The translations under genes and the position numbers were made by a program. This document shows, one piece after another, positions 5,701 to 11,700 of a stretch of 64,000 bases of DNA. The DNA lies in the NCBI GenBank assembly GCA_977016875.1, contig CDRNST010000188.1, forward strand, positions 186,001 to 250,000, written 5' to 3'. How positions within the stretch are numbered: position 1 is the stretch's first letter; the number at the start of each line of letters is the position of its first letter. Origin of the DNA: Pavona decussata (lineage: Eukaryota). Below the pieces are notes generated by a model. That model ran no database searches, was not told the DNA's origin, and was given only the letters and a program-made list of their open reading frames with translations.

Positions 5701-8700
5701 AAGTAAACTTATATATTACAATTTGAAGTAACTATTTTACTGGCTGACTAATTTGGCTGAGTTAGAGGCATCTTCCCATTTCAAGTACTCACTAACAATC
5801 ATCTCGGTTAAAGAAGGATTGGCTCTATAAGAAGCAAGATCTGACTGGCTTTTCACAGCATTGGCGATAAGTGCTGAGATTGCTGTCGTTGGTGTTACTG
5901 TGCTGTTGGTCAAGTCAGTTAGCTCTTTATATCAAACCAGGTACAAATTACTTTAAGCACTCCTTTACACAGTCTTGCTACTAGACACCAATATTATACC
6001 TCATATGCAATAGGAAGAAGAACGTGATGGAACACGGCAAGATAATCAGCATCTCCCATATGTTTCTAATGAGACAAAGAAAACGGAATTAACAACAACA
6101 AAAACTGAACATAAGAGTGTAACGAAACCACCCCGTAGACCCGACCCAGGGACCGATCGGGGCTGCGGGAATTGGGGCGGGGGGGGGGGGGGGATATTCA
6201 AAACGGGCGGTGAAAAATTTGGTTAAGAAAACTCGGAAAAAAAGTGGAAACGAGAAGAAAATAATAACTTGTCATTGTATTCACCATCAGTGAAGCGCAT
6301 TGCAGACAAAAAAAATCCGAGATGAATAGAATGCACCACAGACTTCACAACACCAGTGCTCAATTATATATCCCAGTAATGAATAACAGTGCTTGAACGT
6401 GTACCAATAAATTCTCAGGTCAATGTTGCCTGATAACACAGCCTTCAAACTCTCCAGTAGATTCGTTTACAAAAGTCACAGTAGCAATCAAACTGAAAAA
6501 CTTTCCAACTGATAACTTTGCACTTCTCCAATTTCGACACCGCCTCCTATTGACCAGTCGACTACCGAAACGATTTTAAACAATTGTGAACTTGCACTTT
6601 TAGGATCTGGCTTGTGATCGTTTTATGCAAGTGTTTTCACTACGAAAGCATATTACTAATGCCAATACTGTTGAGTACATTTTTATATTGGTGATTTGTA
6701 AAACGCATTGGTGCTAACCTTGTTCCAGGGCACATTTACTGTATATCCCTTCCCAGGCCCGCAACCAACAACATCATAATTTGCACTTGTGGAAAACGGA
6801 AAAAACTGGGCGTTATCGTAGCGATGTATGGAGAAGTACAGAACACTAGAAAAAAGAGAGAAAAAATCATTAAGCACACAAAATGCAACAAAAATATGTA
6901 ACAAACCTTGGACTAAAGAATCGAGGTTGACTAAATGATCCCAAAAGAGTTTTCTATCCCAGCGGGTTTAAGACCATTTCAAGTTCTTTTTCCCAGGTTT
7001 CAAGACCTAGTTTCTAGCGCCAAGGTCTTATTCTGCGAAGCTTACTTAGAGTGAGGTGTCCAGTCATTTCATATTCGTTTTATTATACTTTATTGGTATC
7101 CTGCCAAGAACTACTACTTACAGAGTTGTGCTACGATTTGCTAGGTTATTAATTTGTCTGTACGTTTTACTACGATATGCGTGTCTAATATACGCTTGTT
7201 TTACCAAATTTGAACGAATTATCACCATTAAGGGCTCAACGGCGTTAGCGAAGACTGTGAAACGGTTACTCGAATGTGAATTCTTTTTGTTACAAAATCT
7301 TGTTGTCTTAAACGTCTCAACTAACGTGACAATTGAGGTCTGGAATAGCAAAAAGCCTAGATTTCTCACTTGTTTGCACTTTTTAATACGATATGCGTGG
7401 CTCAAATACGCAAGTGTAAACATATTTGCTATGCGTTGCTCAAATACGCTGGCGTGACCAAATTTGGAACGAAATAGCAAATTCAAAACCTCAACTGCGT
7501 TAACGAAGACTGTCAAACCGTTACTCGAATTCAGTTAGAAATCTTTTTGGCACAAAATCTTGTCTTAAACGTGTTAGCCAACGTTACGATTGAGGTCTTC
7601 AAGGGCAAAAAGTCTAGAGTTGTCAATAGTCTTTACGCTTTAATACGATATGCGTGGTACAAATACGCAAGTGTAAGCAGATTTGCTATGCGTGGCTCAA
7701 ATACGCGTGTGACCAAATTTTGAACGAATTGGCAACTTCAAGACCTCAACTGCGTTAGCAAAGACTGTCAGACCGTTACTCAGAATGGAAATATTTTTTG
7801 CACACCCTAATGTCACAAAATGTTAAGCCTGCAAGTTAATGTTCCGTAGAGTTCAAATGTTTGTTCCCGCAACTTTAACACTTATATCCCTCAGGGCCCG
7901 GTTGTTCGAAAGCCGATTAACGCTAACCCCTGATTAAAAATTAACCGAGGTTTTCATCTCGCTTATTTTAAGCTAATGATAAAGAAAAGTCAAAGTCCAA
8001 ATTAAAGGATAAAAAGCTTTCGGAAGTATCTTTATTGGTAAGTTATTAAACTAGAATTGAAGTTTATGTTAACCCAGGATTAGGTTAACCTGGCTTGGAA
8101 CAACTGGGCCCAGATGTTCATTTTCAATGTTCCGTAGAGTTCAAAGGTTTGTTCCCGCAACTTTAAAAATTATCTTTTTCAGCTGTTTATGTTCCATCCT
8201 GTGTAGCCGAAACTTTGCCTCTAGAGTCAATGTTGTAAAGTGCAGTCTAGTTAAGGAAAGCCGTAACTTTGACTTGTAACTTTGTCACTATGACTTGTTC
8301 TTTCCTTTCTTGCAGAAGCCCAAGGACGCCCACACGTCCTTCTCCTCTTGTACAGCTGGCACGTTTTTTGACTTTTGTTTAGCAGCAGGTGATTTTCCTT
8401 TCTTGGGTTTGGGCTTACTGTTTCCGTCTGTCGTTGGCGTGCTTTGTTGTGTGTGCTGTTGCTGCTCCGTCGACTTTTTGCCAGTCATTTTGTCACCTTC
8501 CTGGTTTTTGTTACTACTGGTTTGGGCAGACGACTGTTGCTTCGTCCCATCAGCCCTCTTCGTCTTGGGTGGCTGTTCGTCCTCAGAGGAATCAGAGGAC
8601 GAGGAGGAGGTGGACTGCTCATCATCGTCGTCATCTTGCTGGTCCCAGATGGACAAATGTCTGGGGACAGGCCTGCGGCGCTGGGTAATTGAATCGAAGA

Positions 8701-11700
8701 TAAAGACTTGAGTCTTCCTTGAACGCTTGGGTAGTCACGTTTCTTCGGGCTTTTTGTGCAAACTCTTCAGGATTCCGCATAAGCGTCTGAGGCACCAGCA
8801 AATGAACGCACATCATTAACAAGGGTCCCGCAGCATTGAAGCTGTCAACGATTGCTTCGTTAAGTTCGACATCCCTGTCGACTGTTCTTAACAGAGATAT
8901 CACGTCATCACACGTGGGTGGCTCTGTTGTTGGCGGACTTGTCCTTGTTATCAAGTCTGGACAAGGCGCCCCTGAGGGACTCTCACGGTTGTAACAGGTC
9001 CTGTACAAATTCTGGGACAAACATTGTGCCACTGTACTAGCGGATTAACGGGATATTTTCCCTTAAAGTCTGTGCCATTTCCGATATGGCAATGTTCGGG
9101 CGTTGTAACCATTCAAAATTAAAATTGTGCACACGGGGATAAGATTGCTTCTTCCTTCGGGTCTTGAATGGCAGCTCCATAGTTCACAAAAAACTCATCG
9201 GGAAGGATTTGTTGTAGTTTGTTTTGGGCGTTGCATAGGCTCGATTTCCAGCCGCTGTTCGGGAAACGAGCCCGCGTTCCAGCGGCGGAAATCGAGCCTA
9301 GGCGTTGCAGAGCTCGCTGAAGATGACTGCGACATCTGCAGAGAGAAAATAGGTTGAGTGGAATGTTTGAATGGTACTGTCACATTTTCAGTTTACTGCA
9401 TCGAGTGTGGACAGGCAGTTCTCGCAGACACAAAGGAAGACATGGTTGGAGGTTGAAGAAGTCACCGTTTTAGTAGGAGAGAAGATAATATGATAGGAAG
9501 TTCAGGAAGTCACGGGTTTCAGCTGAGTTACTTGCATTGGCTGCATGATTGAGAGGTCAGACTTTCTTCGTACCCGGGACAGGGCGACGTACACAAAACC
9601 AGGTGGTACCGTAGGACAATCCAGCCACACCAGGAGATGCTTCAGATTCTGTCCCTGAGATTTGCAGATCGTTCTGGCGTATGCTGGAGTGAATGGATAT
9701 CGAGTGACATCTCCCTGTCCCTCCACTGTATGAGTTACAGGATAGACAAAGGCACGCTACCCGTCTGCAAACTGAATTATGATCGTCTGCCCATGATTTG
9801 ACACAATGATGGCATCCTGGCTGTTGACTATCCTTAATGTTTTGTCCATGTTCTCTGTGATAACTATCTTCATCCCACGGTAGGGTAGGATGTCTGGCCC
9901 ACCAGCTACTGCTGCACAAGGTACGTTCGTGAGTGGCTGCTGCTCTGCAAATAGCCTCTGGGACACTATGTTGTTGATCCTTTGGGCGGCCGCTCTTGAT
10001 ACTGTCATAATGACTGTGTCGCTCGCGTGTGTTCGCAAATGCGCCATACAGCTGGTCGTCATCTAGGAATCCCGGCGGACAAAGAACAACCGACTGTTGG
10101 AAGTCATCCAACTGGTCCTGAGTGGGTTGGAGGTAGCGCAAGAGGTCCTCAAAAGCTGCATAATCTCTGTCAACTATTCTGAATTGCTGATACAGGGCAT
10201 GTTTCACTGAGTTTTGCTCTGAGAAGGTAGTGTCGTTTAAGATGGAGATAGTGCTGGACACCATGCCGTCTACAGTCTGGAGAGGCTGTTGCTGACATTT
10301 GTCGCCTGCGATGACCACGACTGGACGACAGTTCAGGCGATTGAAGGTGCCCGCCACGATGTGAAAAGATTGTGGAGAGACCAGAGACGCCTCATCAATG
10401 ACTACTTAATCAAATCTGTTCAAAGAGAAGTTGACATCCATGCTTTCGTTAGGGTCTACTGGGATGTGGAAGGCTGCGTCAGTGGAGGGTCTCACACTCC
10501 AAGTCTGATCCGAAAATGGCTCGGTAGCACTGTGCAAGAAGTGCCACTGGAACTGCAAGAAGAACGGATGCTTCGTGCTGCAGAGCATGGTGTATGGCCC
10601 TGATAACCACCTTGAATTTAATTCAAAGTAACCCTTTTCAACAGTTTGAGCCTGGTCAAATCACATTTACCGACAACAAATTCAGATTTACACTCTTGTT
10701 TGGTTAACAAATCTTTATGGCTCTTTTCTGGTTGAAAGTACAGTGGGACCCCTTCACACATTAATGGTTATTAGTCAGGGAACTACGATTTGTCTCATGC
10801 GACACGCTTACGCCATGTCTACAACACGAATCGCGTCGTGTAAATCAACCTACAAAATCCTTACGACAGACGCACACAACACGAAAAATGTCGTAGGATT
10901 TTAAAACATGTTTTAAAATCCTACGACAATCGTAGGTACAGGCAATGTTGAGTGGCGAGAGTTGTGTACGATTTTTACATGACGCAAGCAGCGCGCGCTC
11001 TAAAAATCGCATGCGACAGTCGTAAGAGAAAATCGTACCGTCTAAATCGCCCTTAATGTTTAAAGAATGAGCAGCAGTGTTTTATTGGGATTTAAAACCA
11101 CGAGGCGCAGCCGAGTGGTTTTATACCAGTGGAAAATCAGTTACTTTATGTGATTTTTAATTAGATTAGAACTCTTCAAAGTATAATCACCCAGCTGTAT
11201 CTAAGTGGGGTCCTAAGAAGGAGTGTTGTTCGTGAAAGTAAATGTATAACCAACAGTTCTTCTCAGAACTGAAATCACCTGGGCCCAGTTGCTCATAGCC
11301 CGATTAAACTAATCCTGGATTAACGTGAGCTTTGGTTCGAGTTTAATTACTAATCAATAACGATTCTTCCAAAAAAAGTTTGGCCCTCAGTTTTGACTTA
11401 GAGTTTTCTTTACCTTGAGCTTGAAATTAGCCTTTAAAACTATTTTTAACGAGCAAAATGAAAACCTTGATTAACTTTTAATCGTAGATTAGCCCTAATC
11501 GGCTTTCAAACAACCCGGCCCTGGATGATTCATTGATTAGATAAGGCCCAGTTCAGACGCCGAACTTTTCATGAGCCGAACTTAATTTACTTGAAGCAAA
11601 ACCAATCGCAATGTTAGCTTTTTTTTTTATTTTCTATTTTTTTATTTGAAATGTGTTATAATAATTAATGCATTAGGTTTGGCTCATGAAAAGTTCGGCG

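Follow-up and report, generated by a model that had tools for sequence, protein, structure and literature searches.

Is a decayed open reading frame (ORF) that lies directly behind the helicase of a rolling-circle transposon a gene of that transposon, or is it a host exon that the transposon captured once? This question is raised by a stretch of 64,000 nucleotides from Pavona decussata (assembly GCA_977016875.1, contig CDRNST010000188.1, positions 186,001 to 250,000), which we refer to as the window and in which positions are counted from the first letter. On its minus strand, from 10619 to 6959, the window holds what is probably an old copy of a low-copy, Helitron-like transposon found in stony corals. 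The copy is dead and 5'-truncated, and the remains of its helicase (part of the transposase, RepHel) are followed on the same strand by the second frame, here called ORF2. An earlier note, made from the letters of the window, had proposed that ORF2 encodes a dedicated accessory protein in a distinct family of rolling-circle elements with two genes and is not a one-off captured exon, and the linkage, purifying selection and co-divergence described below bear this out.

What is understood of Helitron transposition comes from one element, Helraiser, which was reconstructed and encodes a single protein. A second gene would set the coral element apart, as a single ORF is typical of animal Helitrons (PMC4067079). 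A literature search, which did not cover Repbase and Dfam, found no published description of a second gene in a coral Helitron, and ORF2 appears to be a protein family that is so far undescribed.

ORF2 is linked to RepHel and has diverged with it

The 602-Mb P. decussata genome contains six copies of ORF2. One is intact (contig C536, 442 amino acids, aa), one has a single frameshift (C195) and one is nearly intact (C144-a); the copy in the window and those named C144-b and C58 are all decayed. The window copy, C144-a, C144-b and C58 have ORF2 directly 3' of a helicase on the same strand. The C536 copy (G000:C536:9938-11266) has no RepHel; it is cut inside the spacer that separates the two genes, of which about 90 bp and the splice acceptor are kept. 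The C195 copy is rearranged. All six retain either the element's spacer or RepHel, and no stand-alone host-type paralogue was seen among them.

The same arrangement is found beyond this genome. A full RepHel lies upstream of ORF2 on the same strand in three of three assembly contigs (L053-L055). Among 18 metagenome loci, 12 extend upstream by 500 bp or more and could be assessed, and 11 of these have the end of the helicase upstream on the same strand. On the metagenome contig L066, an uninterrupted RepHel ORF of 1220 aa is followed by an intact ORF2 of 439 aa. The linkage persists across ORF2 lineages that are a mere 30-60% identical. In addition, when 14 loci are compared in pairs, identity at the C-terminus of the helicase is correlated with identity at the N-terminus of ORF2 (Mantel r 0.45, a value reached in 6 of 2000 permutations), which indicates that both genes diverged together.

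Word-index searches returned 124 relatives of ORF2, and 50 when the query was taken from another subfamily. Two of the 124 are named entries, both annotated 'unnamed protein product' and both from Porites evermanni; none of the 50 is named. A hidden Markov model (HMM) was searched exhaustively against 1.84 billion cluster representatives (clusters at 50% identity) and yielded 635 ORF2 clusters at E<=1e-3 and 357 at E<=1e-10. A look-up of cluster members gave no taxon names. Every one of these matches has the ORF2 domain at its N-terminus, and the matching proteins are 70-580 aa long. Ten intact ORF2s read from the loci measure 419-538 aa.

Substitution patterns differ between the two parts of the protein, an N-terminal core and a C-terminal tail. 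In the core, the synonymous rate (dS) is saturated in most pairs of lineages, with nonsynonymous rates (dN) of 0.13-0.56. The ratio dN/dS is 0.07 between L056 and L060 (dN 0.052, dS 0.69) and 0.14 between L056 and L057, so purifying selection on the core is strong. For the tail, the same two pairs give 0.59 and 0.38; here composition and short motifs are maintained, and the sequence is not.

These observations also bear on the idea that ORF2 is a host gene that was captured once, long ago, and has since been carried along, perhaps with marginal use or a part in counter-defence, outside the chemistry of transposition. Such an origin has precedents. Helitron-like elements capture genes, and according to the HELIANO survey they stably carry about 20 Pfam domains, among them RPA, OTU and endonuclease domains; these accessory genes were judged fragmented, not always detected and probably non-essential (PMC11417382). 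As the survey is based on Pfam, ORF2 would have escaped it. The fast evolution of the tail (dN/dS 0.4-0.6) and the lack of a detectable tie between ORF2 and DNA-processing folds would also suit a captured gene. However, a core dN/dS of about 0.07 between element lineages, the fixed position of the gene, its co-divergence with the helicase and the absence of any host-type paralogue among the six genome copies would be hard to reconcile with capture. A passenger gene would not stay so strictly in a selfish element, and we regard this origin as unlikely. We hold with high confidence that ORF2 is a real, dedicated gene linked to the element, and the data above show it to be an ancient, element-borne one.

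ORF2 has a helical core and a basic, disordered tail

The earlier note had described a globular-looking core followed by a tail rich first in Asp, Glu and Ser and then in Lys, and both parts are recovered in the window (core at 9335-8621, tail at 8671-8291) and in intact homologues. An AlphaFold2 model of the core, built with 121 sequences, is all-helical, with a mean predicted local distance difference test score (pLDDT) of 81.5, a predicted template modelling score (pTM) of 0.68 and half of its residues above 90. According to this model, the first ~210 aa of ORF2 contain a compact all-helical domain of which ~170 aa are folded. Conserved motifs of the core are NYNKHFPRSFLLNYG, NCEWLxRPNIAxSEMAxTL, RLDNKDK and FNAxGP, and its isoelectric point (pI) is 5.3-8.7. 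In the model of the full-length protein, residues 206-426 (~220 aa) are disordered (pLDDT <50), and a short amphipathic C-terminal helix spans residues 428-438, over a conserved Asp-Val-Trp-x-x-Leu. The tail has a pI of 9.3-11.6, with ~20% Lys+Arg and 13-20% Ser. It opens with an acidic run straight after the core and continues with poly-Ser and acidic stretches and several Lys/Arg runs of at least three residues.

None of the searches with ORF2 gave a family or a fold. Three intact ORF2s matched 0 Pfam families, and PHROGs and NCBIfam gave no match either. A profile search against the sequences of the PDB reached a best E of 1. With the predicted structure, Foldseek found nothing in the PDB at E<=0.001 and no match among the predicted viral structures of BFVD, and the best hit of VIA wide (Z 5.6) lies below the chance level for helical bundles and concerns generic bundles. 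The ESM Atlas held no usable match, a scan of viral contigs found no relative, and inspection by eye revealed neither an LxCxE motif nor a PIP box. The family and fold searches thus agree with the earlier note, in which no resemblance of ORF2 to RPA, OTU or apurinic/apyrimidinic (AP) endonuclease had been seen, and the structural check that had been proposed ends in a confident all-helical core with no fold match.

A Rep gene next to a second gene whose product has a long disordered and basic region recalls many small replicons of single-stranded DNA (ssDNA). ORF2 might then be a structural or nucleoprotein-like protein that coats or packages the ssDNA circle, and the elements would be virus-like. 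The pI of the tail, up to 11.6, would fit such a protein, and two ORFs expressed by alternative splicing would be a virus-like trait as well. Parvoviruses and geminiviruses/mastreviruses offer the parallel that we infer, namely a compact unit in which an acceptor at the start codon gives access to a gene downstream of Rep. Against this, the predicted fold is all-alpha, neither a jelly-roll nor capsid-like; no relatives occur in the predicted viral structures or viral contigs searched; and every copy seen is chromosomal, often in head-to-tail arrays. Its splicing, moreover, is predicted from sequence, unlike that of these viruses. We therefore consider a coat or packaging protein highly improbable.

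The element is Helitron-like, with a fused Rep and helicase

Full units of the element are ~7.3-7.9 kb long and consist of a RepHel ORF of ~1200 aa, a spacer of 0.15-0.85 kb, ORF2 of 420-540 aa and 3' non-coding tandem repeats. The RepHel of L066 has a zinc-finger-like CxxC...CxC motif, Rep motif 1, an HUH motif (HLH, aa 468) and two Tyr (YVSSY, aa 573), fused in one ORF to a helicase with Walker A (GKPGTGKS), Walker B (VVVDEAS) and motif VI (YVALSR). Pfam assigns Helitron_like_N to it at 39.9 bits (cut-off 28.9) and AAA_30 at 42.5 bits, above the cut-off. The helicase had been called Pif1 in the earlier note. It is Pif1-like in that the nearest solved relatives of RepHel are a bacterial Pif1 (5fhd, E 4.9e-6) and Helraiser (7lcc, E 1.4e-5); the Pfam cut-off is passed by AAA_30 and not by PIF1, which scores 19.5-22.2 against a cut-off of 25.9.

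By definition, a Helitron RepHel joins a Y2 Rep to a superfamily 1 (SF1) helicase, and a Replitron has a Y1 Rep without fused helicase (bioRxiv 10.1101/2022.12.15.520654). The HUH motif, the two Tyr and the fused SF1 helicase of the coral protein correspond to the former and rule out membership in the Replitrons. RepHel ends two residues past a conserved PV in all lineages. Its C-terminus has no Exo_endo_phos match, that is, no AP endonuclease, so that strictly speaking the element is no Helentron. RPA and OTU were likewise not found in the element.

Units stand head to tail with a period of 7.3-7.9 kb on contig C144 of the P. decussata genome (order b-a-c, with only the start of the third; G000:C144:1654000-1672000) and in L053, L055 and L063, as expected from rolling-circle copying. 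A boundary of homology near TCGAATGTCCGTAA, preceded by A or G, is common to six loci. The units stand in arrays, and none offered a clean single insertion or an empty site. The family is low-copy, with about eight helicase loci in the genome. At a distance of 13 kb from the C144 array lies a distant helicase relative (G000:C144:1646964-1648106; 30% identity, many stops), which probably belongs to another Helitron-like family.

A comparison of the proteins and of the arrangement of units places the element next to the canonical animal Helitrons (Helraiser/Helibat). Like these, it has one ORF with a zinc-finger-like N-terminus, an HUH two-Tyr nuclease and a fused Pif1-like SF1B helicase, and its head-to-tail arrays are a further likeness. 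It differs in that its RepHel is short (~1200 aa) and so divergent that the match to Helraiser is confined to motif VI, and in that it adds a conserved second gene. In plant Helitrons and some Helentrons with accessory genes (HLE1/HLE2), a second gene is also recurrently tied to RepHel, usually downstream, and presumed to aid transposition. Unlike those genes, ORF2 has no Pfam domain, is predicted to be all-helical, with neither the oligonucleotide-binding (OB) fold of RPA nor the papain-like fold of OTU, and is retained far more strictly (11/12 and 3/3 loci). Helentrons and the DINE-1-like HINEs share with the coral element their presence in Cnidaria and the 3' non-coding tandem repeats, which recall the HINEs derived from Helentrons (PMC4067079); the coral RepHel lacks the C-terminal AP endonuclease domain of Helentrons. 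Hypothetical ORFs were described by Thomas et al. only for a Phytophthora proto-Helentron.

A conserved 3' splice signal precedes ORF2

The spacer between the two genes is unconserved and unalignable between lineages, except at its 3' end. There, a YAG abuts the ORF2 ATG in 20 of 24 loci and lies two bases upstream of it in the four loci of subfamily B. These 24 do not include the window copy, which likewise reads CAG|ATG. Over the 24 loci the pyrimidine fraction at positions -18 to -4 of the ATG is 0.79, against a background of 0.54, and a branch-like CTNAY motif occurs 15-25 nt upstream. Branch-like motif, pyrimidine tract and YAG together form a complete 3' splice-site signal, which suggests that ORF2 is expressed from a spliced mRNA, most likely as its first codon-bearing exon. 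The strong acceptor that the earlier note had placed against the ATG is indeed there in the window (ttttctctctgcag at 9349-9336, a pyrimidine tract and CAG), with the ATG at 9335-9333, a few bases from where it had been put. In subfamily B the spacer is ~0.7 kb long as opposed to 0.16 kb (L054 7400-8000, L037 3990-4700), and these longer spacers have in common a conserved internal block that resembles an old repeat insertion.

A strong 3' splice site that coincides with the start of ORF2, in phase 0, could also serve a different product. ORF2 would then be the C-terminal exon of RepHel, and splicing would remove the helicase stop to give a RepHel-ORF2 fusion. A GT that could act as donor, also in phase 0, is found two to three codons ahead of that stop, within the conserved Pro-Val codons. 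However, in many lineages the base at +3 of this GT is C (GTCAAC, GTCCAG), and the Val codon explains the conservation of the GT; we rejected it as a donor because its consensus is poor in most lineages. The helicase stop is always present, and the ORF2 ATG is kept in all lineages together with the start Met-Ser-Gln/His (mostly MSQ, MSH in the L060 group). Furthermore, none of the best 150 relatives of ORF2 is fused to a helicase or longer than 582 aa. A fusion protein is thus quite improbable, and we retain the reading of ORF2 as a separate product of a spliced mRNA.

The start of RepHel has features of its own. A YAG lies 5-7 nt before its ATG in most of the lineages examined, L054 being an exception. 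Clusters of TCACGTCA-like repeats, resembling a cAMP response element (CRE), lie 50-120 nt upstream of this ATG (L066 3880-4080, L055, L053, L062, L031), and a conserved TTGG(C/T)TA(T)AG is located 5-15 nt upstream. These could represent a promoter and a second acceptor. It is a matter of speculation whether one leader serves two alternative acceptors, one for RepHel and one for ORF2.

The relic in the window and its surroundings

The copy in the window is biologically inert, a dead relic (Table 1). Its broken helicase and ORF2 were searched piece by piece, without joining or repairing them. Three reading-frame pieces of the helicase match the RepHel of L066 (tblastn, E 2.7e-136) and are 71-82% identical to the helicase of the sister copy C144-a; in Pfam they give weak AAA_30 and Herpes_Helicase matches. 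The relic begins just past Walker A, takes in Walker B (VVIDEAS) and ends at motif VI (YVALSR). It is damaged by in-frame stops at 10406-10408 and 9757-9759 and by a frameshift near 10020-10034, and its natural stop is at 9502-9504. As no homology was found upstream of 10619, this copy lacks the Rep domain, Walker A and the first 851 aa. The reading in the earlier note has to be corrected in that the window copy contains no Rep domain, being truncated inside the helicase; the decayed ORF on the same strand directly 3' of the helicase stop was found as described.

Table 1. Features of the element and its insertions in the window, with a second copy of RepHel.
Feature	Position	Strand	Remarks
Helicase relic	10619->9505	minus	aa 852-1218 of the intact 1220-aa RepHel (L066); last ~30%
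Spacer, helicase stop to ORF2 ATG	9501-9336	minus	166 bp
ORF2 relic	9335->8291, stop 8290-8288	minus	decayed
Palindromic insertion in ORF2 relic, like a miniature inverted-repeat transposable element (MITE)	9236-9300		65 bp; 14-bp terminal inverted repeats TAGGCTCGATTTCC
Repeat like a short interspersed nuclear element (SINE) or MITE, secondary insertion	7886-8125		in 3' non-coding region of the element
Tandem array, 3' non-coding region	7176-7804	minus	period ~257 bp, ~2.2 copies
Last block homologous to the region downstream in C144-a	6959-7107	minus	73% over 152 bp
Second, separate decayed RepHel copy	33607-37186	plus	aa 45-1218 of the same RepHel family

Pieces of the ORF2 relic match intact homologues at E 3e-66 (core of C144-a) and E 1e-49 (ORF2 of L066), and the peptides quoted in the earlier note map to 9205-9134 and 9138-9040. 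At least four frameshifts, near 9200, 9135, 8930 and 8715, and in-frame stops at 9037-9039 and 8983-8985 break the frame, so that the conserved N-terminal all-helical core is present in pieces. An acidic run at 8650-8621 is included in the tail, which is acidic and Ser-rich, then Lys-rich, and has kept the C-terminal DVWxxL motif. The 65-bp insertion has a 9-bp target duplication, ggcgttgca, on its two sides (9227-9235 and 9301-9309) and has dozens of copies in the genome at 81-100% identity (268 first-look candidates in the genome search).

The element does not end at the stop of ORF2, where the interval given in the earlier note ends; homology continues 3' of it to about 6959. The 257-bp array is homologous (~70%) to a 226-bp array that follows ORF2 in C144-a, and the last block in Table 1 is probably the 3' end region of the window copy, the exact end being only approximate. 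Between the array and ORF2, the ~240-bp secondary insertion stands between unusually long direct repeats of 48 bp (7838-7885 and 8126-8173) that are 94% identical. It has an inverted relative at window 11276-11523 and another on contig C536.

Exons of a host histone deacetylase flank the relic on the minus strand, at ~6686-6904 (Pfam Hist_deacetyl, E 6.6e-9) and ~11950-12060 (motif in the translation). Judging from these exons, the relic occupies most of a ~5-kb intron of the host gene in sense orientation. The intact strong acceptor of the relic (9349-9336) is a candidate cryptic splice site for host deacetylase transcripts.

The second RepHel copy in the window has its HUH motif HLHMLVW at 34871 and its Walker A at 35969, and reaches 29.5 bits for Helitron_like_N (cut-off 28.9). 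It ends ~100 bp into the spacer and thus has no ORF2. Just upstream of it, at 33037-33529, a block of the non-coding 'Y' region of the element lies in inverted orientation. Near 5027-5170 the window has a run of N.

Possible role of ORF2 and significance

The features of ORF2 outline a possible mode of action. The protein would be made from a spliced mRNA with its acceptor at the ATG, and the Lys/Arg runs of the basic tail would bring it to the nucleus, where the tail may also bind nucleic acid or chromatin in a non-specific manner. The helical core would act as a non-enzymatic adaptor that aids rolling-circle transposition, for instance as a binding partner of RepHel or of a host factor of replication or chromatin. 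We put forward this role of a nuclear helper or adaptor as a tentative one. A bolder reading, which we consider rather doubtful, is that of an obligate two-gene system, in which one primary transcript would use alternative acceptors at both start codons and ORF2, with its unmatched fold, would be an essential co-factor that, for example, escorts or coats the ssDNA circle or tethers the complex to chromatin.

Several points weigh against these proposals. The function is deduced, with no family, motif or fold match in the above searches to go with it. As the core is near-neutral or acidic, it is no obvious DNA binder, and named homologues are limited to P. evermanni. No splice donor was identified for ORF2. 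The sole hint of its expression comes from three small runs, by guess of RNA, in which 35-42% of the words of the C536 locus occur; this locus may thus be transcribed. Finally, the element may be of the Helitron or of the Helentron subtype.

A protein without Pfam domain and with an unmatched fold, which stays beside RepHel across deeply diverged lineages and has a core dN/dS of about 0.07, nevertheless argues that the element needs ORF2. If so, ORF2 would offer a handle on how rolling-circle transposons deal with their ssDNA intermediate or gain access to chromatin, and a marker for a Helitron clade that is under-described by domain-based tools. Some 635 orphan protein clusters in public data could then be labelled as transposon genes. 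Should the obligate two-gene system prove true, ORF2 would represent a new protein class in Helitron biology, and the coral element a virus-like scheme of gene expression in a DNA transposon.

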